Source: Cyanophora paradoxa CCMP329 (taxonomy: Eukaryota; Plantae; Glaucophyta). From it: DNA of 64,000 bases. The stretch lies in NCBI GenBank assembly GCA_004431415.1, contig QPMI01000107.1:85814-149813 (forward strand), given 5' to 3'. Positions within the stretch are counted from its first letter, which is position 1; each line of letters begins with the position of its first letter. Under the pieces are notes generated by a model. The model was not told the origin of the DNA and made no database searches. It saw nothing but the letters and a program-made list of their open reading frames with translations. Below are positions 9,646 through 64,000 of the stretch, one piece after another. Made by a program: the position numbers and the translations under genes.

Positions 9646-12600
9646 CTAGAGCGCGATGGTGGGCACGGGCTCGACAACGCCGCCCTGCACCACTGACGAG
9701 CGCTCCGACACGTTGGAGAGCTGCCGCGCGGAAATCAGGCGGGAATTCAGGCGACGAGGCGCGGCAACGCGCACCCGCGGCGCGGGGAGGGCCTCGCCCT
9801 CGTCCGCCTCGGCGTCAACGGGCATGGCGAGCATCACGTCGCCCTCACTCACGGTCTCCGCCGTCGCGACGACCGCCGGCGTCGCCAGGGCGTTGAAGGA
9901 CGGCTGGGCGCTGAGGGCCGGCGTGGCTTGGCGGATCTCGGTAGAGGCCCGCACGGAAGTCGGGTGCGAGACAGGCATGCCCTCCGAGACGTGGACGAGC
10001 TCGTGCGACGCGCGGTCCGAGCCGATCGCGTACACCTGGTCGCCGCGGTTCGTGACCGACTTGATCGCCGCTGCGGGAGGAGCGTGAGACACGAGGAAGA
10101 GGTGCAACGAGCGCAGAGAGGGCGCCCGCGCACATTTGCGGAGGTAGCGGATGCGGGCGGCGTAGGCGACTACGACGGCGACAGCGACGAAGGCGACACC
10201 GCCGATGACAGCGCCGACAATCACGCCGATGTTCGAGGACGAGCTCGAGCGAGCGGCGTCCGCGCCGCCCGTAGCCGGCGGAACCACGGGGACGGGGTTA
10301 GGCGCCGGGAGGGCTGCCTTAGGAATCGCGGGCGGCACGCTCTGGATGAGGGTGACGACCTGCGCGACGCATGCACAGTCAGCCCTGACCGGAAGAAGGG
10401 CGGGCGACGGGGCGCACGTCGATCGAGTCGCATGAGCAGGAGGTGACGCTCCAGCCCAGGTCGTTCCAGTTCATGGTGCCGGTCGCGAACGACTGGCGGC
10501 CCGAGACGTACGCCTCGTCGATGACGCCGACGGGGCCGTCCGAGCCGGGGATGGTCTGGCACGACGGGCCCGTGCACTCGTACGTCGACGAGCAGCCGGC
10601 CGACGAGAAGCCCTTCACGCTGCTGTCGTAGCGTGCGCACACGGAGACTGCGAGGGGGTCAGTTGGGCACGCGGCGCGGAGCGACTGCAGCGGAAGACGC
10701 ACTGGTCGGCGCCGTGCAGACAGGGGACGGGCACTTCGAGCCGGCCGGGCACTTGATCGTGAGCGTCATGCCGCGCGTGTACGCGTTGCCCGCGTGCATG
10801 CGGCGGCCCGTCTGCAAATCGAGAGATCAGTATAGTCGAGTGTGCAAATGACCGAAGGCGGCTCACAGATTCGAGGCGGAAGAACGAGCTCGACGTCGAG
10901 TACCCGTCAAAGAGCTGGTAGCTCGTGGCCAGGCTCTCGGGGTCGATGACGACGTTGTTGTCTTGTTGCCTGCAGCAAAGCAGTCAACAACTGAAATAAA
11001 CGACTACTCGATCAATCGCAAAAGCGGACCAGCAGACGAGAGGGACCGCCTGCTTCTCGGCGACCTCAGTGCGGTCGATGCCGGTGATCTGGTACGTGAT
11101 CGAGCGGAGCATGAACTGCCCGTCGCTGCTCGACGACGTGTACACGATCGTGCCCCCGTTCACCATCACCGCTGTGGGCAGCTGGGCGCCGGGCCACAGC
11201 ACGCGCTTCACGGAGACCGCGCTGGTACCCAGCATGCGCCGGCGGGGCAGGCTCAGCTGCGTCTGGATTAAGGACGGCAGCTGGGCCGTCGGCAGTGCTC
11301 CTTGAGGCTCGATGGATGCCGAAAGCGACGGCTTGATTGCCTTGAGACGGCGCGATGACGACTGGCGAAGAGCGCGGTACTCCGCATCTGGTTCAGACCC
11401 GAGAATCGCGCGGCGCTTTGAGGCCAAGGTTCTCGTGCTTTCCAGGTCGGGCATCTTCGCGAAACCTGGGCACAAGTTAGGTCGATCTGTATCACGTAAA
11501 GAAAAGAGATATAAATTTACCATTCGGGCAGTAGCAAGTTGGCAGAGATGTTACACCGCAGTTTCCGCCTGGACAGCTGACGCGGAGCCTGAACGTGCCA
11601 GTCCCACCCTTGGCAGCAATCTTGGTTCCGTCCGCAGTCCCACCTGATCCGGAATAAGAACTTCGATTGACCTTGCAGATCAAAACATGGTCGCCGAAAC
11701 GCACCAACATCCCAGAGGCCAACGACACGATTGCCGTCCACAATACGCGAGTACATCGGGGCCTTGAAAGATGAATCAAGGCGCTGGAAGTACCAGTTCG
11801 CATTTTGCGCAGGTGTCAGTCTCGTGTACATGGTCTGATTGCCCAGAGCGCTCGGATCAAGGAAGCTGTTGTTTAACCGCGGGTCAACTGTTACGCCTGT
11901 CGCCCACGTGTTGTACGGGGCTGTCCCGTAGAGCTCGTACGGGGTGCCAGAGAAGTTGCACTGGACGTAGGACACGAACGGGACGCCAAACGATCCCCAG
12001 TTTGTGACAGTGTAAGTGCCAGTGACATGTTGATTGACGGAGTCGACCACAGCAGTCGGCGTCGCGCCCACTCGGCACGGAACAGTTGTGCCATTGTTTT
12101 CAAAGAAACGGTTCCCGAAGCCAGGGCACGGCTGGAAAGTGCTTCCACCAGCAGTAATGTCGCAGCTCACCCAGTCATTGAAGCCGTCGTAAGTACCGCC
12201 TCGCGCGTCCTCAAAGACAAAGTGAGTGCTGTGCAATCAACCCTAATCAGCGCATGGATGCCCAAGCAGATGAGAAAAGTGCACCGATAATAGTAAGTGT
12301 AGGAGGTGCCACCAGCACGGTTCAGATCCCAGGCGTCGTTACCAGTCAACCCCAACAGCGCCCAGTTCGGGGGCGTGATGATGACAGGATCAAACATGTC
12401 CATCGTGTACAGCGGGGGGGGATTGGTACTGTTGCGGGCCGTGAAGTCCGGAATGTAGAGCCCGTACGAGTTCGGGAAACGCGAGAATTGGCCCCAATTA
12501 TTCGGGGCCGTATTCGCAATGTCGGTAGGATTGATGACCGTGTCGTAAGTTTCGGGATCGCAATCAGTGTCCGCCTTGAGGCAGTCGCCCATATTGTTGT

Positions 12601-15600
12601 GGAAGCTGGTGCACGTGTTAAGTGAATTCTTGTTGCATTTGTAGCCGACTCGCCCATCTGGGGTAAATGTGCATTGGTCAGACTTGCAATTCGTGCGGTA
12701 TATCTGCACGCCCTTGATCCCGCCATTCCTTCCTAGATTCTTGTAGCTCTCTGGAACCAGGACGCGGAACTCGTGGCGCTTGATGTTCGTGACCTTGCGG
12801 ATGAGGCTGTACGTCCGAAGCGGAGTGACGTTGGGGATCTTGGGGTTCGGTCCGCACGGCCCGTAAGGATCGTCCGTGCCTCCAAGGCGGCAGCCCGTGT
12901 CGTCGGTGTCGTAGATTGCCTCCTGTGCGCTATCAGCACCTTTGTTGTCGTATAGCATACACGCAGAGCTGTGCAGCGAGATCAGTGATCGGAATTTCGC
13001 AATCTCAAAAAGAATGACAAGCGAGGTACGCACCGCCAGTGAATGACATCCAGGGATGGAAGCTCTTCGTCGCCTCCTGACACTTCGTAGAACTGCTGCA
13101 GTTGATTGCTTGCGTCTCTGTACAGCGTGAAATCCGCTGTATTTCGACTCAATGAGGTCCACGGTGAGCAAGACCGTGCCTGGAGTCCGAAGCAGGTCTT
13201 GCGAATTGGCGAGTAGCACTGCCCGATGCCGCACCCTTCAATGTCAGCATCCGCCTCCGAACAGGGGGTGACCTTGGGGAGAATGCCGTCCTTCGCTGAA
13301 CTCCAAGGGCACCGCATCCGCTTGATGATGATGCCCTTGATCTTGTCCCGAGCCGCGGCGGGTTCGTACGAGAGTGCGAACTTCATGCGGCGGTACGTCA
13401 AATTCAGCTGCAGCTCCACGAGCTTCATCGAGCACGTGTACGAAGCGAGCCTATATCGATTCTCCGCAGATCTGCTCGCGTTGCGATAGAAGACGCTCGC
13501 GTTCATGGCGCCGATGTCGAGCCATTCGTAACCCACGAAGAGATCCGTGATGTTGACGTGGTACCAGGCCCTGCGAGACCATTAATAGAGAAATCACGTG
13601 GAACGCAAAAAGACACGCACTGGTAGCAATAGTAAACGCCAAGATTATCCGGAACCGTATCAATAAAGCTCGTCTGATTCCCTTCGAAGGAGAAGAATCT
13701 GTATTCCGTCTTCTTGGACGGGTCGGAGCAACGCCAGCGCTCAACGTAGGTGTTCATGATCTTGCTCCAGGACGGGATCCACGAAGGCGTGATTCTGACG
13801 GCTACAGTCTTCGAACCCCAGTCCGATAGCGTCGAGTTGAAGCTGACGATCGGCTGCGGCTCGATGCCATCGTAGACCATGCCCAGCGGGCCCGGCATCC
13901 CCGAGCACGTCATGTTCATCCTTCCGAACGTGACTTCAGCTCCACCTGCACAAGAGTCACTAGCCACTGAGAGAGCATAAAAGTACAGAACGCACTCGTG
14001 TTGAAGAATCCAATGTCCGAGATGGGCTGGCCTCCTGCACTGCCCGCTCCTGAGCAGTCCGTTATCTTGTACTCGGCCTGGCAAAGCGGGGCATTCGGGT
14101 TGATGCCGTTGGCCGTGAAGTTGTAGTTGGGGTCTGCAAATTTGCGGCCTCAGGAAAACGCGACCAAGAAACGGAATCAGAATTCACGGACCAATGCTAC
14201 AAGTCAGGTTGCCAGTGCGCTGCAGGCCCTGCTCCTGAAGCTTGGCCGGCGTGGTGAACGTGACTGTGAGGAAGGAATCAGTTCATAACCCGACGAAAGG
14301 GATGGTGGCGAAAGCGCACGGTTGATCTGAATGTTCGGCGTGAGCCACGTGACTCCACTCTTCCCGGACAGTGCAGCCATTTCAGTTGTGCACGAGCTCT
14401 GCAAATGTGTACATGAGTGACTCTGAAAACATCACACTAATTCCGATTGAGCCAGACCTGGACGACACTCCTGACAATGTTGTACAGGACGTCGCAGATG
14501 TCTCCGTTGCCATCGGGCTGATCGTTCTTGTCATCGTCGTAGTCCGGAATAGGAATCTTGGACGGCGACGGCGATGGGCTCGGGCTCGGGGACGGCGAGG
14601 GCGTCGGAGTGGCCAGCACGTCGACGCGCGAGGCGCTCGACATGAACGAGTCCTTCGAGTTCGTCGAGACGAAGAAGGCCCTGCGCGGAAAGAGGTTAGG
14701 GCACGATTGAGAAGCAAGGCAAAAGCGAGCCGCGCACTTGTAGTTGTACGAGGACGGCCGCGGGACGTTCGTGTCGACGAAGGACTCTTCCGCCGCGCTC
14801 GACTTCGCGATGTTCTTGACCTGAGTGGTCGTGCAGCCCCTGCTCGACACGCACGACGAGTAACTCGACGTGTTGAATGCCGACTCGGCGCACACGCTCG
14901 TGTTGCAGTTGTCGCGGAAGACAAGCGTGCTGGCGATGACCGCCTTGAGGCCGGTATCCGTGGGATAGGTCGTGGTCACAGTGATGTCGTCCTGGTTCTC
15001 GTACGAACCCGTTCCGGCGGTCGCGTTGATACCCGGGGCGTTGAGCCGCGTCGTGGTCCCGAAGCAGCTGTTCGACGCCGGGCTCGTGGTCTCCTGATCG
15101 GGTCCGCCAGTGACAGTGACATGGTACTCGTACGTCTCCTCTGGGAACAGCCCGGTGCTGTCCGGCTTGGTGCTAACCCGAGTGAAGGAAGCGCCAGATT
15201 TGATGTAGAGCTCCCATCCGGTGCCCTTGCTCTTGGTATCCGCGGCCAGAGTCATCTTGACCGGCGTGATGCTTGAAACCGTCACGGAGCAAGTCGGCCG
15301 AGGCCACGTGCTCGCGGTGTAGATCACAGCCGAGGTCGAGACGTAGCCGTCGTCGTACGCCATGACGTACGCGAATGTGAAGCTGTAAGACACGCCGTCC
15401 GGCTGGATCGAGTTACCGGCGTATGAGCTGAGGACGATCGTCGGAGACCCGCTTGTCAGATTCGCCACCCAGTTGCCGGAGCTGTCGGTCACGTAGACGG
15501 CGGCCACATTCGGCGCCCCTGCCGCAATCGCGGCTGCAGCGTCGAGCTTGATCTTGGTCCAGGACGGAGACAAGACAGCCGCGTTTGAAGTGCCCGACGG

Positions 15601-18600
15601 CGGGAACGGCAGGTCCGGAGTGCGCAGGGAGAGCTCCGCCGAGACGTTGGAAGGATTGCCGCTCGTGTTGAACTTGGCCGTGTACGCGTACCATGTGCTC
15701 GGGCGCACAGCCGTGTCGGTCCAGGCCTGAAGCGCGCTCGTTGCATCGGCCTCGCGCACGACCACGTTGTCCCGGTAAATGGTCGCGCCAGTAATGGTCT
15801 GCGCGTTGTAGCCCAGGGCCACGTCCTGCTCCGAGTACCACACCTTGATCTCGATTGCCGTCGTCGTCGGCTCCCTGACCTTGAGCACGACGGGCGTGGC
15901 AACCGGGACCACGATCTCGACCGGAGCCGACTCATCACCGACCGCGGTAACCACATCGTTCGGCGCAACCACGAAGACCGCCGTGTACCTGTAGGCGACG
16001 CCCGCATCCGAGAAGCGGTTCGCGTCAACGACCGGAGGAAGTCCTCGGAGGGTCGTCACGAGCACGCCATCCCTCATCAGGCGAGTGTGCGTAATGCGGT
16101 TGTCCACGCCGTCGGACGGCAGGCTGATGCGGACGGAAATCCCGATGGGCGTCACCAACACCGGGGTGATGACCGGCTTCGGCGGGGACGTGTCCGCCTC
16201 GCACGGATCCGAGCGGAACGAAAGCGCGCCAGTGGTCGTGTAGTCCACTGAGAACACGTACGACGAGCTCGCGTTGAGGCCGGTCACGATTCTCTCCAAG
16301 GAGCTCGGCGCAATGGCTCCGTCCTTCGAAATAGCGCCGTCCAAGAGGAGGTCGCTCCGGAAGAGACGGAGCTTGTCCGCGAGGGTGGTGGCCACCGCGG
16401 GGATCTGGAGCGCGAGCTTCACCGTCGTGGACGTCGAGTTGACGTACGTGCACGTGGGCTTGGGGGCCGTCTTGGTCCACGCGAGCGTGAGGGGCGACAT
16501 GTCGGACTCCGAGAGAAGCGTGAGGACCTTGGCGGTGTAGTTGTACGCGGTGCCCGGCAGGCGGTCCGCGTGCGTGAACGTCAACGAGACCGAGCTGTTC
16601 CGGTGCACCTCGACGGGCCCGGCATCGGTGACGAGGTAGACGACGAAGCCGGTAATCACTCCAGGCGGCGCGTACGGCGGCGAGATCATCAGGGTGACCG
16701 AGGTCAGCGTCGCGAGAGTCGTCATCGCCGGCTCGGTGAAGTAGAGCGCCGGCGGGTTCGGGCGGCCAAGCGTCACGACAAGGTTCGAGGACCACTCCGA
16801 ATCCTCGCCGAGCGTGATGGCCTTCGCCCGGTAGGTGTACGTCTGACTCGCGTTGAGCCCCGTATCCGTCGGGCACGTGTAGGTCTGCGGGATGCTAGCC
16901 GGCTCATCCTTCACGCACGACAGCTCCTTCACACCGAAGTCGCGCTGCAACAGCACCTCCGTGACTGCCGACTCGGTGCCGTCCTGCGCAAGCGTGACCT
17001 GGATGGACACCCTGTCGAGGTCCATCGACGTGTTCCTCAGGGACGGCGCCCCGGGCACGAGCGTGGTCATGGTCACGGGGTTGGAGAAGTCGCTCCTGAG
17101 GTCGCCGAGGCCGTCCGGAAGCTGCTGCACGATTCGCGCGTAGTACGTCCTCGTGTCGCCGGGCTGCAGGCTGGTCTGGTTGTGGGTGCGCACGTCCACG
17201 TCGGGGTACTCCCACTGGTACGTGGCCAACAGGGCTGCGTCGGTGTCGCTCTGCTCCTTGAGCACGCGGAGGGCAGCGCCGTTCCCTGAGGCGTCCATGT
17301 CCGTGAAGACGAACTGGAGCCACTGGGCGCCCCGCGTCCCGTTCGTGCCGATCGGCGGGGACGGGCGCGTCCACGTCCTCGTGAGGTCGGCGAGCACGGA
17401 AGGCGCGCCTTGCGTGTCGTACCGCGCAGTGTAGTTGTAGTTCGTGAACGAGTTCAGGCCGCCCGGACACTTCTGCGTGTCGCCCGAGCCCCACGCTCCG
17501 GAGACCACCGTGGACAGGGTGCCATCCGACTGGACGAGGTACAAGTACACGTTTCCGATCGTGATGCCCTCGGTCGCGGGGACGTAGATGTTGACGCAGA
17601 CCGACTGGTTCGTCGTCGGGTCACGCTTCCAAGTCACAGTGGGCTTGGGCGGGTACTGCGTCTGGACCACCACCGGATCGCCCTTCTGGCCGTTGCTGGA
17701 GTCGCTGTCGGACTTGTCCGACTTGCCTGCCGGTGAGTCGAGGACTGCGTTGCAGGAGATGACCTCGCCGGGCAGCACGGTCAAGTAGACGACGGTCACG
17801 CCGGACGGGCTGGGCGCAATCGTCTGCGTGCCAGCAGTGCCGTTGCACACGAGGATCGTCGAGTTCGTCAACGCCTTGCTGGCGTCATTGTCGATGGTGA
17901 CGGTGACCATGATGCTTGTCGAGTTCAGCGGGGTCATCTCGAGGTTGGGCGCCGCCGGCGGCAGCGTCGGATCCACCTGGCCCGTCTGGCTGGTCGTGCC
18001 TCCCTTGCCCTTGAACTCGCACACCCAGACGTACTGGACGGCGAAGTCGACCGTGTACGGCGCGCTCGAGCTCGTGAAAGTGAACTGGCCGTTCGAGACC
18101 GTGAACGTCGTGCCCGGCGTATTCTCCTCCCAGCAGACCGTGCTCGTGACCACCCCCTCCAGACCGGCTGGAAGAGGCACACTCACGGTGACCGACGGGC
18201 CCGTCGTGGTCGAAACCAGAACAGGCTGGGGCGCGGGAAGGGCGGTCCAGAGCTCCTTCGGATCAGACAGCGGCGACTTCACAACCACGCCGTCGTTGTC
18301 AACCGTAAGCAAGGCAGTGTAGTTGTACGCGCGGCCCGCGGCGAGACCGGTGTCGTTGAAAAGCAGGCAGCACCCGCTCGGCGCGCTGCAGGGCGTGCAC
18401 GTGTTCGGCAGCGTTGCGATCAGCTGGCCGTCGCGGTACAGCTCCGTGCCGTTGCTCTCCACCCACTTCTGAGGGAGCTCAATCTGGACGCTCGTGGTCG
18501 TGGTGGTGGCCGGGTGCGGGCCCTGAGCCACCGTCGGCGATCCCGGCGGCGTCGTGATCGTGATGTTCACGCGCGTGCTCTCCATGCCGTCCTTGCCGAT

Positions 18601-21600
18601 GTAGTACGCAACGTACGTGTAAGTCGTCCCAGGGGACGCGTTGTCGTCAGTGCAGTCGGTCACGCCCGGAGTCTCACCAGCCCAGGAGCTGTTCACCTTG
18701 CAGAGGAAGCCTCCAAGGACACGCTCGAGCACGAGCACTGTAATGTCGTCATCCGGAGTCGACGGCTCCACGTGCAGGATGCTCGTCGACGCGTCGCCCG
18801 AGGACGCAGTGGTGGACGAGGTGAGCGACAGGACTGGCGGGTTCGGCGAGGTCCAGGCACTGTCGGCAGTGCTGTTCGGCGAGTCCACGCCCGGTGTCTG
18901 ACTCGGCTTGCCGGCCGTGGTGTAGTCCGCCTTGTACCAGTACTCCGAGCCTGCCGCCAGGCCACTGTGAGTGTACTCGTAGGTGGCCGACGTCCTGAGA
19001 ATCTCGGTGAGCTTGCTGTAGGGGCCCTCCTCCGAGGCTGCGGTGTAGATGCGGATTGCGACTGCCGCGTCCTGCTCGGGCACAGGCTTCGCCACCGTCA
19101 CCTTGACGGACGTGGCATCGATGCCCTTCGCCGAGAGCGTTGGCGCCGCGGGGTCCTTAGTCTTGGCAGACAGCGACCCGTTCGGCGACTTGGAGTAGAG
19201 CGTGATGAGGGCTGCCTCGTAGGCGAAAGTCAGGCCTGGCGGGAGACCGGAGTCCGTGAACACGAAGAAGTTGACGTTGCGCGGTGCAGCCATAGTCTGA
19301 GAGGCGGCCAGCATTCCATCGCGGTACAGATCGATCCTCGTGACGACAGGCCTGAGGTCCTCTCCAGGGATCGTGTTCACCTCGGGCGCACGGGTAGGAT
19401 AGGCGACCTTGACCTTCACGACGGTCGCGGTGGGGTAGCTCGGAGAGGAGTCGACCGAGTCCAGCGTGAGGACGGGGGCAGCAGGAATGGCCTGCGTGAC
19501 CTGAAGGACGTCCGAGGTCGGCGAGTTCAGCCCCGTCGTAGTGTAGTACGCCGTGATGTTCGACGTCGTCGCCGGCTCCAGGCCCGTGAGCGTTATGCAG
19601 TCCTCGAACTCGTCCTCCTTGGGGATGGAGAACGTGAAGGGGGTGCTTGTCGGAAGGTACAGGCGGGAGAACTCCGTCGTCTTGATCTCAGCGTGGCTGA
19701 GGTTTCGCGGGTACGTCACGCAGATCTTCACGGTCGTCGCGGTGACCAGCGTGTACGAGATGGTCGGCTTCACCACCAGCAGCGCCGTCACGTGGAGCGG
19801 ATCCGAGATCAGGCCCCTCTCATTGCGCTCCAAGCCGTTGTAGAAGACCAAGCCCTCGTACTGCGCCGTGTACTCGTACGTGATGCCGGGGTTGATGGCC
19901 CCGGTGCCATCAACGCACGACGCGAGCCAGTTGTCCGACGCCTCGCTGCACACTCGCGACGAGTTGCGCAACAGGAACGTCTCGGAGACGCGGAGCTTGT
20001 TGAGGTCGGTCTCCGCGAGGTCCACCCTCAGGTCGAATTCCGTCTTGTAGCCCAGGGACAGCTGGGGCGCCGGCGGGCCGGTGCGGGCCTGCTTCGATTC
20101 GCTCTCCTTCGAGTCCGCAGGCGTCAGGTACACCGCCTTGTACCAGTAATCCGTCTGGTGCGCGCGGCCCGTGTCCACGTGGCGGTACACCCCATCACTG
20201 TCCGCCGTCGGGACCGTCGCGACCGTCGTCCACTCACTCCCCGCCGCGCTGGACATCGCCCGGGAGATCCGCACCCCCGTCACATTCACCACGGGGTCGA
20301 GCGTCGGCAGCTCGACCTCCAACCACACCGCCGTCGCGTTGACGGCAGTCGTCGTGAGGGTCGGCTGCGGCGAGTCGTCCGTCGTCACCGACGCCGTGTT
20401 CGAGTCCTGCGAGGGGCCCACCCACGAGGTCGCAATCGCCCAGCACGAGTACGTCGTGCTCGGCTGCAGGGACACGAGGACCTCCTCCGCCAGGCCCATC
20501 CGCTCGATGGCCACCGTGCGCGCCGTGTTCGTGTCATTGCAGGTCAGCTGGTAGTTGTCGGCAAGCACGTTGCTCGCGTCGTGCTCGATTTCGATGTGAA
20601 CCTTGATGGTGTTCGAGTCCACCATCGTCATCGTCACGGCGGGGGCCTTCGGCGGCAGCGTCACCGCCACGTCGCCCACCTCGCTTCTCGTGCCCCTTGG
20701 CCCTCGAACACGCACTTCCACACGTACGCCGTCGCCCAGTCCACCTTGTAGCCCGTCGCGCCGTTTTCACTCGAAACGACGAACTGCGCGCCCGAGACGG
20801 TGAAGGTGACCGCCGACGCGTTGGCCAGCAGACCGTCCTCACGACGACGCTCTCGAGCCCCAGCGGCAGGGAAACGTTCACTGTCACCGACGGGTAGTTC
20901 GTGTTCGCGTGGATGACCGGCACAGGCGCAGGCAGGGCGGTCCAGAGCTCCTTCTTCGCCGACTCCGGCGACGTGACGCGCACCCGCCATTGTCGACCGT
21001 CAGCAGCGCCGTGTAGTTGTACACATGGCCCTCGGCCAGGCCGGTGTCGTTGAATCGGAGACAGCAGCGGCTCGGATCGTCAAGGCGATGGCACGGCCCG
21101 CAGCTCGACGGCGAGAGCGGGATCGTCACGATCGGGCTGGAGCCGGCGCCGTCGCGGTAGAGCTCCGTCCCGTTGCTCTTCTCCCACCCCACAGGGAGCT
21201 CAATCTCCACGCTGATGGTCGAGGTCGTTGCCCGGTACGGGCCCTTGACGACCAGCGGTGCTTCTGGTGGCGTCGTCACGTTGAAGTGCGCGCGTTCGCT
21301 CGTCAGCCCCTCCTGGCCAATGTAGTGCGCCGTGTACGTGTACAAAGTCGCGGGCCTCGCCCCTGCGTCCACGCACGTGGCCGTGCCGCCCACCCCGCCC
21401 AACCATCCGATCGGGTTCGGCGCCGAGCAGCTGAAGCTGAAGCTGTCGCGCGACACCACCAAGCCGGTGACGGAGCTGTTCGCCACCGACGGCGCCATGT
21501 GCAGGCTGACAGTGACCGCGCTGGAGCCCGTCACCGTGGCCGAGTTCAGGCTGAACGCCGGCGGCGACGGCGCGGTCCACGCCCCGTCCGCAACGCTCAG

Positions 21601-54600: not shown

Positions 54601-57600
54601 CTCCGCCAGTGCCGACCCGTTCGGGAGTTCGTGTACAGCGTGAACACGTCGCTGGTAGAGTAGAGCAGGCCAGGGCGAGCTCGTCGTCGATGAACTCGTA
54701 CGTGTCCAACGTGCTGACTGCGCCCTGCGAGCCAACGAGCGAGCCGTTGCGATACAGGTCGATCCGCTTGATGACGGCAGGAGGTCCTCGGCCGGGCTGT
54801 CTGCATCTCCGGGTCGCAGGCTCTTCGGTACACCACCTGGACCTTCACCGCCGTCGCGTTCGGGTAGGCCGGCTCGAAGCTCACATACAGCTTCGGCGCT
54901 GCCGGCTCGCCTGCGTCACCTGGAGGACGTCCGAGGTCGGCGAGTTCAGCCCGTCGTAGTGTAGTACGCCGTGATGTTCGACGTCGTCGCCGGCTCCAGG
55001 CCCGTGAGCGTTATGCAGTCCTCGAACTCGTCCTCCTTGGGGATGGAGAACGTGTGGGGGTGCTTGTCGGAAGGTACAGGCGGGAGAACTCCGTCGTCTT
55101 GATCTCAGCGTGGCTGAGGTTTCGCGGGTACGTCACGCAGATCTTCGCGGTCGTCGCGGTGACCAGCGTGTACGAGATGGTCGCTTCACCACCAGCAGCG
55201 CGTCACGTGGAGCGGATCCGAGATCAGGCCCTCTCATTGCGCTCCAAGCCGTTGTAGAAGACCAAGCCTCGTACTGCGCCGTGTACTCGTACGTGATGCC
55301 GGGTTGATGCCCGGTGCCGTCAACGCACGACGCGAGCCATTGTCCGACGCCTCGCTGCACACTCGCGACGAGTTGCGCAACAGGAACGTCTCGGAGACGC
55401 GGAGCTTGTTGAGGTCGGTCTCCGCGAGGTCACCCTCAGGTCGAATTCCGTCTTGTAGCCCAGGGACAGCTGGGGCGCCGGCGGGCCGGTGCGGCCTGCT
55501 TCGATTCGCTCTCCTTCGAGTCCGCAGGCGTCAGGTACACCGCCTTGTACCAGTAATCCGTCTGGTGCGCGCGGCCCGGTCCACGTGCGGTACACTCCGT
55601 CGCTGTCCGCCGTCGGGACCTCGCGACCGTCGTCCACTCACTCCCCGCCGCGCTGGACATCGCCGGGAATCCGCACCCCCGTCACATTCACCACGGGGTC
55701 GAGCGTCGCAGCCGACCTCAACCACACCGCCGTCGCGTTGACGGCAGTCGTCGTAGGGTCGGCTGCGGCGAGTCGTCGTGTCCCGACGCCGTGTTCGAGT
55801 CCTGCAGGGCCCACCCACGAGGTCGCAATGCCCAGCACGAGTACGTCGTGCTCGGCTGCAGGACACGAGGACCTCCTCCGCCAGGCCCATCCGCTCGATG
55901 GCCACCGTGCGCGCCGTGTTCGTGTCATTGCAGGTCACTGGTAGTTGTCGCGAGCACGTTGCTCGCGTCGTGCTCGATTTCGATGTGAACCTTGATGGTG
56001 TCGAGTCCACCATCGTCATCGTCACGCGGGGCCTTCGGCGGCAGCGTCACCGCCACGTCGCCCACCTCGCTTCTCGTGCCCCCTTGGCCCTCGAACACGC
56101 ATTCCACACGTACGCCGTCGCCCAGTCCACCTTGTAGCCCGTCGCGCCGTTTCACTCGAAACGACGAACTGCGCGCCCGAGACGGTGAAGGTGACCGCCG
56201 ACGCGTTGGCCCAGCAGACCGTCCTCACGACGACGCTCTCGAGCCCCAGCGCAGGGAAACGTTCACCGTTACCGACGGGTAGTTCGTGTTCGCGTGGATG
56301 ACCGCACAGGCGCAGGCAGGGCGGTCCAGAGCTCCTTCTTCGCCGACTCCGGCGACGTGACGCGCACCCCGCCATTGTCGACCGTCAGCAGCGCCGTGTA
56401 GTTGTACGCGCGGCCCTCGGCCAGGCCGGTGTCGTTGAATCGGAGACAGCAGCGCTGAGAGATCGCATTGCGATGCACGGCCCGCAGCTCGACGGCGAGA
56501 GCGGGATCGTCACGATCGGGCTGGAGCCGGCGCCGTCGCGGTAGAGCTCCGTCCCGTTGCTCTTCTCCCACCCCACAGGGAGCTCAATCTCCACGCTGAT
56601 GGTCGAGGTCGTCGCCCGTACGGGCCCTTGACGACAGCGGTGCTTCTGGTGGCTCGTCACGTTGAAGTGCGCGCGTCGCTCGTCAGCCCCTCCTGGCCAA
56701 TGTAGTGCGCCGTGTACGTGTACAAAGTCGCGGGCTCGCCCTGCGTCCACGCACGTGGCCGTTGCCGCCCACCCGCCCAACCATCCGATCGGCTCGGCGC
56801 CGGCAGCTGAGCTGAAGCTGTCGCGCGACAACCACCAAGCGGTGACGGAGCTGTTCGCCACCGACGGCGCCATGTGCAGGCTGACAGTGACCGCGCTGGA
56901 GCCGTCACCGTGGCCGAGTTCAGGCTGAACGCCGGCGGCGACGGCGCGGTCCACGCCCCGTCCGCATCGCTCAGATCCGAGTCCTTCCCGGCGATCCGTC
57001 CGGCTCGCGGACGTCGTGTAGTCCGCCTTGTACCAGTACTGCGTCCCCGCCCACGCGAGCCGTGTCGGTGTACACGTAGTGGCCCTCCGGCTCCGGCTTG
57101 CTGTTGATCTCCGCATCTCCTGGTACGTCCCGTCGACCGACGGCGCGCGGTAGATGCGGATCGTCACTGCCGCCGCCTGCTCCGGCACCGGGCGGTCCAC
57201 CACCAGCGTGATCGCCGACGTGTTGCGGTCGATGCCCGTCGCCGTGATCTTGGGCTTGGCGGCGATGTCCGTCTCCGCCAGTGCCGACCCGTTCGGCGAG
57301 TTCGTGTACAGCGTGAACAGCGTCGCCTGGTAGTAGTAGAGCAGGCCAGGGGCGAGCTCGTCGTCGATGAACTCGTACGTGTCCAACGTGCTGACTGCGC
57401 CCTGCGAGCCAACGAGCGAGCCGTTGCGATACAGGTCGATCCGCTTGATGACCGGCAGGAGGTCCTCGGCCGGGTGGTCTGCATCTCCGGTCCGCCGGCT
57501 CGGTCGGTACACCACCTGGACCTTCACCGCCGTCGCGTTCGGGTAGGCCGGCTCGAAGCTCACATACAGCTTCGGCGCTGCCGGGCTCGCCTGCGTCACC

Positions 57601-60600
57601 TGGAGGACGTCCGAGGTCGGCGAGTTCAGCCCCGTCGTAGTGTAGTACGCCGTGATGTTCGACGTCGTCGCCGGCTCCAGGCCCGTGAGCGTTATGCAGT
57701 CCTCGAACTCGTCCTCCTTGGGGATGGAGAACGTGTTGGGGGTGCTTGTCGGAAGGTACAGGCGGGAGAACTCCGTCGTCTTGATCTCAGCGTGGCTGAG
57801 GTTTCGCGGGTACGTCACGCAGATCTTCGCGGTCGTCGCGGTGACCAGCGTGTACGAGATGGTCGGCTTCACCACCAGCAGCGCCGTCACGTGGAGCGGA
57901 TCCGAGATCAGGCCCCTCTCATTGCGCTCCAAGCCGTTGTAGAAGACCAAGCCCTCGTACTGCGCCGTGTACTCGTACGTGATGCCGGGGTTGATGGCCC
58001 CGGTGCCGTCAACGCACGACGCGAGCCAGTTGTCCGACGCCTCGCTGCACACTCGCGACGAGTTGCGCAACAGGAACGTCTCGGAGACGCGGAGCTTGTT
58101 GAGGTCGGTCTCCGCGAGGTCCACCCTCAGGTCGAATTCCGTCTTGTAGCCCAGGGACAGCTGGGGCGCCGGCGGGCCGGTGCGGGCCTGCTTCGATTCG
58201 CTCTCCTTCGAGTCCGCAGGCGTCAGGTACACCGCCTTGTACCAGTAATCCGTCTGGTGCGCGCGGCCCGTGTCCACGTGGCGGTACACTCCGTCGCTGT
58301 CCGCCGTCGGGACCATCGCGACCGTCGTCCACTCACTCCCCGCCGCGCTGGACATCGCCCGGGAGATCCGCACCCCCGTCACATTCACCACGGGGTCGAG
58401 CGTCGGCAGCTCGACCTCCAACCACACCGCCGTCGCGTTGACGGCAGTCGTCGTGAGGGTCGGCTGCGGCGAGTCGTCCGTCGTCACCGACGCCGTGTCC
58501 GAGTCCTGCGAGGGGCCCACCCACGAGGTCGCAATCGCCCAGCACGAGTACGTCGTGCTCGGCTGCAGGGACACGAGGACCTCCTCCGCCAGGCCCATCC
58601 GCTCGATGGCCACCGTGCGCGCCGTGTTCGTGTCATTGCAGGTCAGCTGGTAGTTGTCGGCGAGCACGTTGCTCGCGTCGTGCTCGATTTCGATGTGAAC
58701 CTTGATGGTGTTCGAGTCCACCATCGTCATCGTCACGACGGGGGCCTTCGGCGGCAGCGTCACCGCCACGTCGCCCACCTCGCTTCTCGTGCCCCCTTGG
58801 CCCTCGAACACGCACTTCCACACGTACGCCGTCGCCCAGTCCACCTTGTAGCCCGTCGCGCCGTCTTCACTCGAAACGACGAACTGCGCGCCCGAGACGG
58901 TGAAGGTGACCGCCGACGCGTTGGCCCAGCAGACCGTCCTCACGACGACGCTCTCGAGCCCCAGCGGCAGGGAAACGTTCACCGTCACCGACGGGTAGTT
59001 CGTGTTCGCGTGGATGACCGGCACAGGCGCAGGCAGGGCGGTCCAGAGCTCCTTCTTCGCCGACTCCGGCGACGTGACGCGCACCCCGCCATTGTCGACC
59101 GTCAGCAGCGCCGTGTAGTTGTACGCGCGGCCCTCGGCCAGGCCGGTGTCGTTGAATCGGAGACAGCAGCGGCTCGCATCGTCAAGGCGATGGCACGGCC
59201 CGCAGCTCGACGGCGAGAGCGGGATCGTCACGATCGGGCTGGAGCCGGCGCCGTCGCGGTAGAGCTCCGTCCCGTTGCTCTTCTCCCACCCCACAGGGAG
59301 CTCAATCTCCACGCTGATGGTCGAGGTCGTCGCCCGGTACGGGCCCTTGACGACCAGCGGTGCTTCTGGTGGCGTCGTCACGTTGAAGTGCGCGCGCTCG
59401 CTCGTCAGCCCCTCCTGGCCAATGTAGTGCGCCGTGTACGTGTACAAAGTCGCGGGCCTCGCCCCTGTGTCCACGCACGTGGCCGTGCCGCCCACCCCGC
59501 CCAACCATCCGATCGGGTTCGGCGCCGAGCAGCTGAAGCTGAAGCTGTCGCGCGACACCACCAAGCCGGTGACGGAGCTGTTCGCCACCGACGGCGCCAT
59601 GTGCAGGCTGACAGTGACCGCGCTGGAGCCCGTCACCGTGGCCGAGTTCAGGCTGAACGCCGGCGGCGACGGCGCGGTCCACGCCCCGTCCGCATCGCTC
59701 AGATCCGAGTCCTTCCCGGCGATCCCGTCCGGCTCGCCGGACGTCGTGTAGTCCGCCTTGTACCAGTACTGCGTCCCCGCCACGCGAGCCGTGTCGGTGT
59801 ACACGTAGTGGCCCTCCGGCTCCGGCTTGCTGTTGATCTCCGCAATCTCCTGGTACGTCCCGTCGACCGACGGCGCGCGGTAGATGCGGATCGTCACTGC
59901 CGCCGCCTGCTCCGGCACCGGGCGGTCCACCACCAGCGTGATCGCCGACGTGTTGCGGTCGATGCCCGTCGCCGTGATCTTGGGCTTGGCGGCGATGTCC
60001 GTCTCCGCCAGTGCCGACCCGTTCGGGGAGTTCGTGTACAGCGTGAACAGCGTCGCCTGGTAGAAGTAGAGCAGGCCAGGGGCGAGCTCGTCGTCGATGA
60101 ACTCGTACGTGTCCAACGTGCTGACTGCGCCCTGCGAGCCAACGAGCGAGCCGTTGCGTACAGGTCGATCCGCTTGATGACCGGCAGGAGGTCCTCGGCC
60201 GGGCTGTCTGCATCTCCGGTCCGCCGGCTTCGGGTACACCACCTGGACCTTCACCGCCGTCGCGTTCGGGTAGGCCGGCTCGAAGCTCACATACAGCTTC
60301 GGCGCTGCCGGGCTCGCCTGCGTCACCTGGAGGACGTCCGAGGTCGGCGAGTTCAGCCCCGTCGTAGTGTAGTACGCCGTGATGTTCGACGTCGTCGCCG
60401 GCTCCAGGCCCGTGAGCGTTATGCAGTCCTCGAACTCGTCCTCCTTGGGGATGGAGAACGTGTAGGGGGTGCTTGTCGGAAGGTACAGGCGGGAGAACTC
60501 CGTCGTCTTGATCTCAGCGTGGCTGAGGTTTCGCGGGTACGTCACGCAGATCTTCGCGGTCGTCGCGGTGACCAGCGTGTACGAGATGGTCGGCTTCACC

Positions 60601-63600
60601 ACCAGCAGCGCCGTCACGTGGAGCGGATCCGAGATCAGGCCCCTCTCATTGCGCTCCAAGCCGTTGTAGAAGACCAAGCCCTCGTACTGCGCCGTGTACT
60701 CGTACGTGATGCCGGGGTTGATGGCCCCGGTGCCGTCAACGCACGACGCGAGCCAGTTGTCCGACGCCTCGCTGCACACTCGCGACGAGTTGCGCAACAG
60801 GAACGTCTCGGAGACGCGGAGCTTGTTGAGGTCGGTCTCCGCGAGGTCCACCCTCAGGTCGAATTCCGTCTTGTAGCCCAGGGACAGCTGGGGCGCCGGC
60901 GGGCCGGTGCGGGCCTGCTTCGATTCGCTCTCCTTCGAGTCCGCAGGCGTCAGGTACACCGCCTTGTACCAGTAATCCGTCTGGTGCGCGCGGCCCGTGT
61001 CCACGTGGCGGTACACCCGTCGCTGTCCGCCGTCGGGACCGTCGCGACCGTCGTCCACTCACTCCCCGCCGCGCTGGACATCGCCCGGGAGATCCGCACC
61101 CCCGTCACATTCACCACGGGGTCGAGCGTCGGCAGCGACCTCCAACCACACCGCCGTCGCGTTGACGGCAGTCGTCGTGAGGGTCGGCTGCGGCGAGTCG
61201 TCCGTCGTCGCCGACGCCGTGTCGAGTCCTGCGAGGGGCCCACCCACGAGGTCGCAATCGCCCAGCACGAGTACGTCGTGCTCGGCTGCAGGGACACGAG
61301 GACCTCCTCCGCCAGGCCCATCCGCTCGATGGCCACCGTGCGCGCCGTGTTCGTGTCATTGCAGGTCAGCTGGTAGTTGTCGGCAGCACGTTGCTCGCGT
61401 CGTGCTCGATTTCGATGTGAACCTTGATGGTGTTCGAGTCCACCATCGTCATCGTCACGACGGGGGCCTTCGGCGGCAGCGTCACCGCCACGTCGCCCAC
61501 CTCGCTTCTCGTGCCCCCTTGGCCCTCGAACACGCACTTCCACACGTACGCCGTCGCCCAGTCCACCTTGTAGCCCGTCGCGCCGTCTTCACTCGAAACG
61601 ACGAACTGCGCGCCCGAGACGGTGAAGGTGACCGCCGACGCGTTGGCCCAGCAGACCGTCCTCACGACGACGCTCTCGAGCCCCAGCGGCAGGGAAACGT
61701 TCACCGTCACCGACGGGTAGTTCGTGTTCGCGTGGATGACCGGCACAGGCGCAGGCAGGGCGGTCCAGAGCTCCTTCTTCGCCGACTCCGGCGACGTGAC
61801 GCGCACCCCGCCATTGTCGACCGTCAGCAGCGCCGTGTAGTTGTACGCGCGGCCCTCGGCCAGGCCGGTGTCGTTGAATCGGAGACAGCAGCGGCTCGCA
61901 TCGTCAAGGCGATGCACGGCCCGCAGCTCGACGGCGAGAGCGGGATCGTCACGATCGGGCTGGAGCCGGCGCCGTCGCGGTAGAGCTCCGTCCCGTTGCT
62001 CTTCTCCCACCCCACAGGGAGCTCAATCTCCACGCTGATGGTCGAGGTCGTCGCCCGGTACGGGCCCTTGACGACCAGCGGTGCTTCTGGTGGCGTCGTC
62101 ACGTTGAAGTGCGCGCGCTCGCTCGTCAGCCCCTCCTGGCCAATGTAGTGCGCCGTGTACGTGTACAAGTCGCGGGCCTCGCCCTGTGTCCACGCACGTG
62201 GCCGTGCCGCCCACCCCGCCCAACCATCCGATCGGGTTCGGCGCCGAGCAGCTGAAGCTGAAGCTGTCGCGCGACACCACCAAGCCGGTGACGGAGCTGT
62301 TCGCCACCGACGGCGCCATGTGCAGGCTGACAGTGACCGCGCTGGAGCCCGTCACCGTGGCCGAGTTCAGGCTGAACGCCGGCGGCGACGGCGCGGTCCA
62401 CGCCCCGTCCGCATCGCTCAGATCCGAGTCCTTCCCGGCGATCCCGTCCGGCTCGCCGGACGTCGTGTAGTCCGCCTTGTACCAGTACTGCGTCCCCGCC
62501 ACGCGAGCCGTGTCGGTGTACACGTAGTGGCCCTCCGGCTCCGGCTTGCTGTTGATCTCCGCAATCTCCTGGTACGTCCCGTCGACCGACGGCGCGCGGT
62601 AGATGCGGATCGTCACTGCCGCCGCCTGCTCCGGCACCGGGCGGTCCACCACCAGCGTGATCGCCGACGTGTTGCGGTCGATGCCCGTCGCCGTGATCTT
62701 GGGCTTGGCGGCGATGTCCGTCTCCGCCAGTGCCGACCCGTTCGGCGAGTTCGTGTACAGCGTGAACAGCGTCGCCTGGTAGTAGAGCAGGCCAGGGGCG
62801 AGCTCGTCGTCGATGAACTCTCGTACGTGTCCAACGTGCTGACTGCGCCCTGCGAGCCAACGAGCGAGCCGTTGCGGTACAGTCGATCCGCTTGATGACC
62901 GGCAGGAGGTCCTCGGCCGGGCGGCTGCTCGGTCCGGTACACACCTGGACCTTCACCGCCGTCGCGTTCGGGTAGGCCGGCTCGAAGCTCACATACAGCT
63001 TCGGCGCTGCCGGGCTCGCCTGCGTCACCTGGAGGACGTCCGAGGTCGGCGAGTTCAGCCCCGTCGTAGTGTAGTACGCCGTGATGTTCGACGTCGTCGC
63101 CGGCTCCAGGCCCGTGAGCGTTATGCAGTCCTCGAACTCGTCCTCCTTGGGGATGGAGAACGTGTTGGGGGTGCTTGTCGGAAGGTACAGGCGGGAGAAC
63201 TCCGTCGTCTTGATCTCAGCGTGGCTGAGGTTTCGCGGGTACGTCACGCAGATCTTCGCGGTCGTCGCGGTGACCAGCGTGTACGAGATGGTCGGCTTCA
63301 CCACCAGCAGCGCCGTCACGTGGAGCGGATCCGAGATCAGGCCCCTCTCATTGCGCTCCAAGCCGTTGTAGAAGACCAAGCCCTCGTACTGCGCCGTGTA
63401 CTCGTACGTGATGCCGGGGTTGATGGCCCCGGTGCCGTCAACGCACGACGCGAGCCAGTTGTCCGACGCCTCGCTGCACACTCGCGACGAGTTGCGCAAC
63501 AGGAACGTCTCGGAGACGCGGAGCTTGTTGAGGTCGGTCTCCGCGAGGTCCACCCTCAGGTCGAATTCCGTCTTGTAGCCCAGGGACAGCTGGGGCGCCG

Positions 63601-64000
63601 GCGGGCCGGTGCGGGCCTGCTTCGATTCGCTCTCCTTCGAGTCCGCAGGCGTCAGGTACACCGCCTTGTACCAGTAATCCGTCTGGTGCGCGCGGCCCGC
63701 GTCCACGTGGCGGTACACCCGTCGCTGTCCGCCGTCGGGACCGTCGCGACCGTCGTCCACTCACTCCCCGCCGCGCTGGACATCGCCCGGGAGATCCGCA
63801 CCCCCGTCACATTCACCACGGGGTCGAGCGTCGGCAGCGCGACCTCCAACCACACCGCCGTCGCGTTGACGGCAGTCGTCGTGAGGGTCGGCTGCGGCGA
63901 GTCGTCCGTCGTCGCCGACGCCGTGTTCGAGTCCTGCGAGGGGCCCACCCACGAGGTCGCTTCGCCCAGCACGAGTACGTCGTGCTCGGCTGCAGGGACA
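9646..64000 (-). CDS. Giant single-pass (type I) cell-surface protein with ~160 FN3-like repeats and a GPS/GAIN-like juxtamembrane motif; 5' end lies beyond the window
   Basis: Overlapping minus-strand ORFs (e.g. 14437-20721, 24032-28933, 31041-37103, 37016-47566, 56385-61058) join at single-base indels. The 3' part splices in frame via GT-AG introns at 14681-14737, 14399-14457, 14264-14319, 14134-14191, 13946-13995, 13571-13620, 12969-13033, 12229-12284, ~11644-11704 (uncertain), 11487-11520, 10970-11029, 10812-10866, 10648-10702, 10360-10417 and 10071-10133. The stop is TAG at 9646-9648. Domains are ~95-110 aa with a P-x-x-P start and a D-x-G-L-x-P-G-x-x-Y-x-Y tyrosine-corner pattern. Confidence 0.88.
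10156..10230 (-). other. Single transmembrane helix of the giant protein
   Basis: IGVIVGAVIGGVAFVAVAVVVAYAA is followed by the basic stop-transfer sequence RIRYLRK and preceded by a Pro/Ser-rich stalk. A ~150-aa cytoplasmic tail follows. Confidence 0.9.
10345..10642 (-). other. Degenerate GPS (GAIN-domain C-terminal) like motif
   Basis: VCARYDSSVKGFSSAGC...VTSCSCDSID|VVTLI, where | marks the intron at 10360-10417. It parallels the GPS consensus C.(F/Y)W....WS..GC...T.C.C.HL/T.FAVL and lies ~40 aa before the TM helix. Confidence 0.55.
14560..14610 (-). repeat. (SP)n hinge TPTPSPSPSPSPSPSPS between the FN3 rod and the Cys-rich juxtamembrane region
   Basis: Translation of ORF 14437-20721. The codons are varied, so this is a protein-level repeat rather than a DNA microsatellite. 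Confidence 0.85.
14611..19490 (-). other. ~16 diverged, non-homogenised FN3-like domains (D5*-D9*, a full diverged D1-D9 unit, and 2 more)
   Basis: Position-specific similarity to the 9-domain unit, e.g. NGTELYRDG..CC..FNDTGLA.GRAYNYTALLTVDN..ELWTA and YVWVCEFKGKGGT. Confidence 0.8.
19490..39780 (-). repeat. Coding tandem array 1: ~7.4 near-identical 2733-bp (911-aa, 9-domain) units
   Basis: The GACCAGCGTGTACGAGATGG marker occurs at ~19744, 22474, 25200, 27933, 30662, 33393, 36126 and 38858. Intact intervals are 2733 bp. Confidence 0.95.
39780..45243 (-). other. Two diverged 9-domain super-repeat units (18 FN3-like domains), visibly lower GC, in frame
   Basis: Contained in the unbroken ORF 37016-47566. 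The length is ~5460 bp, about 2 x 2730, and domain order matches D1-D9 twice. Confidence 0.85.
40478..44215 (-). repeat. Near-identical ~1025-bp direct repeat (40478-41503 and 43190-44215; offset 2712 bp)
   Basis: The identical protein stretch TVITRNGTGDQPTVS...LEGVFIDTDV occurs twice. I found three nucleotide differences, all synonymous. Confidence 0.93.
45243..64000 (-). repeat. Coding tandem array 2: ~7 further 2733-bp units, running off the window end; indel-rich at ~49.3-57.5 kb
   Basis: The marker occurs at ~47078, 49805, 52495, 55161, 57843, 60570 and 63272. Intervals are shortened by many single-base deletions. Confidence 0.93.

Follow-up and report, generated by a model that had tools for sequence, protein, structure and literature searches.

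A giant and most likely intact gene for a fibronectin type III repeat protein, predicted to be membrane-anchored, in the glaucophyte Cyanophora paradoxa

The window, the whole 64,000-nucleotide stretch of Cyanophora paradoxa CCMP329 DNA analysed here (contig QPMI01000107.1, positions 85,814 to 149,813; G+C 66%), holds a minus-strand locus that runs from its right-hand edge down to position 9646. On the one hand the locus is a long tandem array coding for domains of the fibronectin type III (FN3) kind, and on the other it ends in a spliced 3' part coding for a hinge, a Cys-rich region, a motif resembling the GPS of adhesion receptors, a transmembrane helix and a tail. The spliceosomal introns and a 100% match to a C. 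paradoxa gene model rule out that the window is viral or bacterial. The features of the locus are given below in the direction of reading, with domain types and splicing as predicted; U1 to U15 are copies of the main repeat unit, and indels are insertions or deletions.

53366-64000, minus strand: rod copies U1-U4 of the 911-residue, nine-FN3 unit, about 35 domains, running past the window edge; 119 frame-breaking indels, almost no private substitutions; the least reliable part
45243-53365, minus strand: rod copies U5-U7, 27 FN3 domains, private substitutions in each; U6 (47974-50686) is also on contig tig00000470
39758-45242, minus strand: two diverged nine-domain units, no frameshift; includes public model tig00000431_g691 (44368-40475, 100% identity)
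20641-39757, minus strand: rod copies U8-U14, 63 FN3 domains, about 16 single-base deletions
14738-20640, minus strand: U15 (partly diverged), then about 11 unique FN3 domains next to the membrane; the giant intron-free exon ends here; no frameshift
14737-14681, 14457-14399, 14319-14264, 14191-14134, 13995-13946, minus strand: introns 1-5, GT-AG
13620-13571, 13033-12969, 12284-12229, 11704-11644, 11520-11466, minus strand: introns 6-10, GT-AG
11029-10970, 10866-10812, 10702-10648, 10417-10360, 10133-10071, minus strand: introns 11-15, GT-AG
14458-14680, minus strand: exon with the end of the last FN3 domain, a Thr/Ser-Pro repeat hinge (14610-14560, 17 residues) and an acidic linker
11521-14398, minus strand: eight exons, Cys-rich, sequon-bearing region of about 830 residues; no Pfam match, sole relative the paralogue
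11030-11465, minus strand: exon with three polybasic motifs (11418-11398, 11352-11332, 11244-11227), then the first part of a beta-rich domain next to the membrane
10342-10969, minus strand: membrane-proximal Cys-containing module ending, by its sequence, in a degenerate GPS-like motif
10156-10230, minus strand: single transmembrane helix, after a Pro/Ala/Ser-rich stalk and before basic (Arg/Lys-rich) residues
9646-10155, minus strand: cytoplasmic tail of about 148 residues, low complexity, one intron (10133-10071), stop TAG at 9646-9648

Self-comparison of the coding array yields a period of 2,733 nucleotides, or 911 residues, and the copy at 34290-37022 is intact, with 911 codons and no stop. 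Fourteen copies, seven each in 45243-64000 and 20641-39757, match it at 96-99% identity, and U15, a fifteenth, diverges part-way along. The two diverged units that sit between the array blocks at 39758-45243 share 56% identity with each other and 26-27% with the main unit. A local profile hidden Markov model (HMM) finds nine domains per unit, ten in the last 1,068 residues of the rod together with a gap fitting an eleventh, and about 163 in all between 64000 and 14738. An earlier note on this DNA, made from the sequence alone, had described a rod of about 163 domains; the count stands, and the array is not uniform, being interrupted by the two diverged units. The main unit carries 17 N-glycosylation sequons on 35 Asn, when 6.7 are expected by shuffling and none of 2000 shuffles reaches 17, and the other units have 14-20 each. 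Its 14 Cys are distributed over the nine domains as 2,0,2,2,0,0,2,4,2. Both counts agree with those of the earlier note, and the even numbers of Cys suggest disulfides formed within domains. A non-coding satellite is ruled out by the GC content at third codon positions (GC3, 0.92) and by a ratio of nonsynonymous to synonymous polymorphism (pN/pS) of 0.3. Private or small-group substitutions mark U5-U15 in mosaic fashion (U10 has shared ones only), which suggests gene conversion; there are none private to U1-U3 and two in U4.

Within the two diverged units, a 1.2-kb stretch (40402-41597 and 43116-44306) is 95% identical between units that otherwise share 56% in protein, and to judge by this pattern it is a recent gene-conversion tract.

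The nature of the domains was assessed by profile and by predicted structure. At a Pfam fn3 cut-off of 25 bits the main 911-residue unit finds no match, while the diverged units reach 34.6 bits (2e-8), the membrane-proximal part 22.4 and the paralogue described below 51.4. Modelled from a single sequence, domains D1-D4 of the unit gave a poor AlphaFold structure (pLDDT 40) with weak FN3 matches, among which FN3 domains already ranked at the top, weakly, for the first domain. Given a 41-row alignment, AlphaFold2 predicts D1-D3 as three seven-stranded sandwiches (pLDDT 90.7, pTM 0.81), in an alignment of which three rows have bacterial FN3 proteins as their sources and could lean the model. Foldseek places this model with the FN3 tandems of Dscam, fibronectin, contactin, LAR, tenascin and titin (E 1e-13 to 1e-10, 11-17% identity), and comparison with Atlas fn3 clusters gives TM-scores of 0.54-0.67. 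As modelled, D1-D3 are tandem FN3 domains, and the FN3-like fold that had been read from the letters is borne out for them; D4-D9 are assigned to FN3 via the shared local HMM and Atlas features (0.93) only. A PDB sequence search with an array query returned nothing.

Downstream of the rod, the frame stays open through 15 GT-AG introns of 50-65 nt to the TAG at 9646-9648, giving 1,410 residues after the first intron. Splicing is predicted from the sequence, and the majority of the junctions match the public model of the paralogue. The joined model was handled by a local script only (frame, hydropathy, identity to the paralogue), and database searches were run exon by exon or via the paralogue's entry. 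Hinge, Cys-rich region, GPS-like motif, helix and tail, all proposed earlier, are found in this spliced frame, and the helix scores 2.93 in hydropathy against 1.56 for the next best window, in keeping with a single anchor. Given the sequon excess and a lone helix followed by basic residues, the protein is predicted to have type I topology with the rod glycosylated outside the cell, as had been supposed. The GPS-like motif consists of C-x2-Y at 10639, F-x3-G-C at 10609 and C-x-C at 10438, with a 50-residue insert inside. Measured against the GPS consensus of a His-Leu-Thr/Ser cleavage site and a TxFAVLM element (PMC12716839), Ser-Ile-Asp follows C-x-C in place of His-Leu-Thr/Ser and TxFAVLM is absent, so that self-cleavage at this motif seems unlikely. 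No Pfam GPS or GAIN match was obtained with six 3' exons and the paralogue's C-terminal part, and no PDB match with the C-terminal region; the paralogue's base gave a weak lead, below significance, to a GPS-bearing Atlas cluster (0.77). The polybasic motifs at 11418-11227, two of three of which are retained in the paralogue, are candidate convertase cleavage sites. The tail has no recognised signalling domain. Searches for C-terminal homologues with length-limited queries, which leave room for longer or shorter kin, returned the paralogue or nothing, and a viral-contig scan with one 3' exon was blank.

In the reference the array does not form a single open reading frame, with no stop-free stretch longer than 3,516 codons, and public annotation splits the locus into separate pieces, of which g687 and g693, like g691, correspond to parts of the array. 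Compared with the intact copy we count 216 indels, 196 of them single-base deletions (91%) and at least 213 frame-breaking, a lower bound to which at least one more adds at a unit edge near 37025. They are unevenly spread: 194 fall within 47974-64000, 70 of these in one copy, and about 11 kb of unique coding DNA and all 15 3' exons are free of them. The deleted bases lie in runs of two or more in 75% of cases, vs 39% of positions. Between copies, substitutions have a pN/pS of 0.34 (0.27 for shared variants alone) and include no nonsense change, a pattern that speaks for purifying selection on the array. In 17500-23490 all five covered frameshifts regain one base in public runs, at full depth, as majority readings of Logan contigs in which repeats are collapsed and rare variants dropped; a sixth, at 23423, lies outside the coverage. 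Likewise, models g1174 and g1175 on contig tig00000470 share the private variants of U6, the best block having one mismatch vs 4-9 for all other copies, and read through nine sites broken in U6 of the reference, their own frame errors being different ones; blocks of g1175 match U7 about equally well, and U7's breaks are read through too. Contigs tig00000431 and tig00000470 thus probably overlap within the array, and the gene's 5' half may lie on the latter. By its matches to these gene models the window belongs to contig tig00000431 of the C. paradoxa assembly of Price et al. 2019, for which Canu and Quiver were applied to PacBio RSII reads, followed by majority-rule Illumina correction (PMC6704402). 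Such a procedure, we infer, leaves errors of this kind in repeats. The genome, about 100 Mb in size, is probably haploid (PMC6704402). Because of the homopolymer enrichment, the pN/pS of about 0.3 without nonsense changes, the public runs, the tig00000470 models and the assembly method, the evidence supports reading the frame-breaking indels as long-read sequencing errors and not as real mutations. Tiny introns behind the frame changes are ruled out, as the copies are shorter than the unit and no insertion exceeds 2 nt.

Provided that the indels are sequencing errors, on which the figure depends, the rod has 16,492 residues and the whole 17,902, about 1.9 MDa. The earlier note had claimed one minus-strand gene of at least about 17,800 residues: the minus-strand array and the spliced 3' part of 1,410 residues hold, while the reference is not in one frame and has more than 200 breaks. 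A firm minimum of about 14,300 residues and 127 domains is set at U5 and downstream, because U1-U4 are the least reliable copies, and the protein is longer still once the missing 5' part is added. In a DNA-like run of 111 million letters, contig depth, a measure flagged as not equal to copy number, is 86-134 for sequence outside the repeat, rising to 912-1128 on the longest repeat contigs, that is 7- to 13-fold, when 14 copies would predict about 11-12-fold. This supports about 10-15 copies, excludes an array of two or three and leaves little room for many more identical ones. Tandem FN3 domains measure 3.5-4 nm each, from which 127-163 domains, if extended, would by arithmetic span about 0.45-0.65 micrometre; the 0.6 micrometre of the earlier note likewise comes from a calculation for an extended rod.

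Twenty runs from six studies contain 78-87% of the words of 13500-23400. Three of them, X1, X7 and X9, with 8-33 million letters assembled, show a repeat depth 1-2 times that outside the repeat (about 10 times in the DNA run), and since whole-genome DNA cannot give so low a repeat depth we take them as RNA, which would mean that unique part and array are both transcribed. Their coverage drops on going 5'. Over the unique part X1 shows zero mismatches, so it represents the giant gene and not the paralogue.

The giant protein is not unique in its genome. A paralogue on the same contig, tig00000431_g677, aligns with it from the final units through to the stop (86% over 2,594 residues, 76% over the last 582). 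Its units are 98% identical among themselves and 64% to the nine-domain unit of the giant gene, so that each gene homogenises its own repeat separately. The membrane-proximal FN3 block at 14740-17943, the last 1,068 residues of the rod, is 97% identical to residues 2827-3896 of g677, while the repeat units share only 64%; such identity at the base of the two rods suggests conversion or strong constraint. Besides this 86%-identical paralogue the genome has further related FN3 arrays; those found on tig00000269, tig00021282 and tig00021504 come together with modules of the LamG lectin, S8 subtilase, Kelch, PKD and TIG kinds. A repeat-unit query against 1.84 billion proteins found 16 matches, the best 13 being C. 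paradoxa gene models; outside this species only weak bacterial-type FN3 proteins (E 4e-11 or weaker) were among the 16. Our literature search found no published description of the protein, in line with the earlier note, which did not recognise the architecture as that of a described family, and the single paper that joined Cyanophora with fibronectin type III was about an anammox bacterium. The giant protein is the longest member seen so far of a Cyanophora family for which we found no paper.

On tig00000269, models g23717, g23718 and g23725 interleave FN3 arrays with S8 subtilase, repeated LamG and PKD/TIG/ephrin-like domains and a weak TRP-type membrane part; these are possibly another giant gene split by annotation.

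How might such a protein work? We hold with high confidence that the locus is genuine, most likely a single intact gene. The reading that we favour as a whole, at somewhat better than even chances, is an intact, transcribed gene for a type I single-pass glycoprotein in which the rod is a passive extender carrying a distal binding head, with a giant intron-free exon that grew by tandem duplication and was homogenised by gene conversion. The protein would enter the endoplasmic reticulum, be N-glycosylated at about 300 sites and disulfide-bonded within domains, and then be delivered to the plasma or flagellar membrane of an alga that has mucocysts and no wall (PMC6212826; PMC6704402), where one helix would hold it. 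The rod would extend over about 0.5-0.65 micrometre and keep a putative N-terminal binding head away from the cell, and this head might adhere to, or sample, surfaces, polysaccharides or bacteria. As the GPS-like base is not expected to cut itself, the rod would stay tethered unless a convertase cut the polybasic sites. The anatomy, an anchor, a long inert glycosylated rod and a distal business end, resembles that of known extenders, and this assignment of function we judge to be moderately favoured.

Several points weigh against so complete a picture. None of the 20 runs is on record as RNA, and no intron lies within the stretch that was checked against them, so transcription and splicing are both inferred; four RNA-like runs of the same species label, X21-X24, hold 0-4% of the words, a near-absence that could reflect another strain, small-RNA libraries or a condition in which the gene is not expressed. 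Neither a raw read nor a long one reaches across the array; since Logan collapses repeats and drops rare variants, the bases regained at the frameshifts reflect the majority; contig depth is not copy number, and U1-U4 may be mis-assembled. The signal peptide and the head are absent from the window, as the 5' end lies outside it.

The main rival makes the rod the structural core, or the ruler, of a long, narrow flagellar hair (mastigoneme), one giant anchored chain setting its length in the manner of MST3. C. paradoxa has two kinds of mastigoneme, one of them long and narrow, whose proteins are not named (PMC6704402), and in Chlamydomonas one 8,572-residue membrane-anchored protein spans an 800-nm hair (PMC11015965); a strict nine-domain super-repeat is what a ruler with periodic partner binding would be expected to have, and two paralogues that differ in length lie on one contig. 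Against this, searches of PDB sequences and of the 1.84-billion library gave no resemblance to MST1 or MST3, and the protein lacks long polyproline repeats and a PKD2-like channel domain. On balance we regard a hair core as unlikely, and a stronger version of it as more doubtful still: that the window part, joined to a head-bearing contig, encodes a single chain of 20,000-27,000 residues with some 190 or more FN3 domains, the longest of an undescribed glaucophyte filament family, which forms or measures the long flagellar hair, the repeat number of each paralogue setting filament length. To our knowledge no larger FN3 array than one of some 190 domains would be on record. Alternatively, a convertase might free the ectodomain as a 1.8-MDa glycosylated fibre for mucilage or for discharge from mucocysts, the transmembrane piece serving for trafficking only. 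Three polybasic motifs (11418-11227), of which the paralogue keeps two, a cell with mucocysts and without a wall (PMC6704402, PMC6212826) and the subtilase domain on a related FN3 array would fit this; yet cleavage is read from motifs only and flanking cysteines could keep the pieces linked, and we consider a shed fibre improbable.

Less probable again is that the frameshifts are real and the locus a decaying duplicate of g677, or that the array is far shorter and was inflated by assembly. The reference does contain at least 213 frame-breaking indels, the locus is fragmented in public annotation, U1-U4 are nearly without private variants and an 86%-identical paralogue is close by; but this rival does not accord with the lack of nonsense substitutions at a pN/pS of about 0.3, with unique coding DNA and 3' exons free of indels, with the sites tested being filled in public runs, with the same copy unbroken at those sites on another contig, with a roughly ten-fold repeat depth in the DNA run, or with copies U5-U15 that can be told apart. 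The least likely, if barely behind decay, is a force or ligand sensor of the adhesion-GPCR or polycystin-1 kind, in which a pull on the rod would be relayed by a GAIN-like base, either to the tail or to a channel acting as its partner. It draws on the GPS-like Cys and aromatic pattern before the helix and on the weak Atlas lead (0.77), and it is opposed by the missing His-Leu-Thr/Ser and TxFAVLM tethered agonist, by a single transmembrane helix, and by the base finding no match in Pfam GPS/GAIN or in PDB. A mechanosensor is the weakest of the suggested functions because the GPS-like motif is without cleavage residues and the tail without a recognised signalling domain.

By the features tested, the giant protein does not belong to the RTX, titin, adhesion-GPCR, polycystin or MST families. 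In anatomy the passive extender has its closest counterpart in MpIBP of Marinomonas primoryensis, which has a membrane anchor at one end, a 0.6-micrometre extender of about 120 near-identical beta-sandwich repeats, and a gene that assemblies likewise left unresolved (PMC5550230). MpIBP is bacterial, exported by type I secretion and made of Ca2+-stabilised one-domain Ig repeats, whereas the C. paradoxa protein is eukaryotic, of FN3 type, with a nine-domain super-repeat, a C-terminal helix and predicted glycosylation; no sequence relationship between the two was found, RTX repeats or a type I secretion signal gave no Pfam match, and the gene is spliced. The mastigoneme axis protein MST3/Mstax of Chlamydomonas resembles it as a giant algal membrane-anchored chain with repeats that could determine how long a surface filament becomes (PMC11015965); MST3 differs in its 42 polyproline repeats and PKD2-like channel domain, the C. 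paradoxa protein in its FN3 domains, one helix, twice the length and only a 17-residue Ser/Thr-Pro hinge. Drosophila Dumpy (23,000 residues, 2.5 MDa) is also a membrane-anchored extracellular giant of small tandem modules, but these are EGF/DPY modules with a ZP domain, in an animal apical matrix and without an FN3 rod (PMC8520396). Polycystin-1 and the adhesion GPCRs share with it a large ectodomain built of modules and, beneath this and close to the membrane, a GPS-like motif; they have 7 or 11 transmembrane helices where there is one here, and the cleavage residues and tethered agonist that are missing here. Titin, too, has a very long FN3-type tandem in super-repeats, and D1-D3 match its A84-A86 in fold; it is intracellular, mixes Ig with FN3, has a kinase and no transmembrane helix, while the C. 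paradoxa protein has a helix, a sequon excess and no kinase or Ig match in Pfam. Titin has about 132 FN3 domains, and the C. paradoxa protein may have more.

If translated whole, a chain of about 1.9 MDa or more would bring the size class of Dumpy and titin to a single-celled alga whose lineage, the glaucophytes, serves in reconstructing the common ancestor of plants and algae. Giant repeat stalks are already a known design; what this one would add is a eukaryote reaching the bacterial long-extender adhesin design via FN3 domains. The surface and flagellar-hair proteins of C. paradoxa are not described in the papers searched, and the giant protein and its kin are candidate surface filaments. 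Long-read errors in near-identical repeats split genes of this kind into small models, and annotations lose sight of them as a result.

Elsewhere in the window, an inverted duplication of 307 bp (2692-2998 and 3632-3938, 99.3% identical) carries a tRNA-Leu(AAG) in each arm, at 2911-2992 on the minus and 3638-3719 on the plus strand. A very GC-rich spliced gene at about 4200-8750 on the plus strand possibly encodes the telomere CST subunit CTC1, to judge from a weak Pfam match of the open reading frame piece at 7794-8363 (E 1e-3, below cut-off). Nearer the left-hand edge, 1238-2251 is a GC-rich tandem repeat of 139-140 bp in 7.3 copies.

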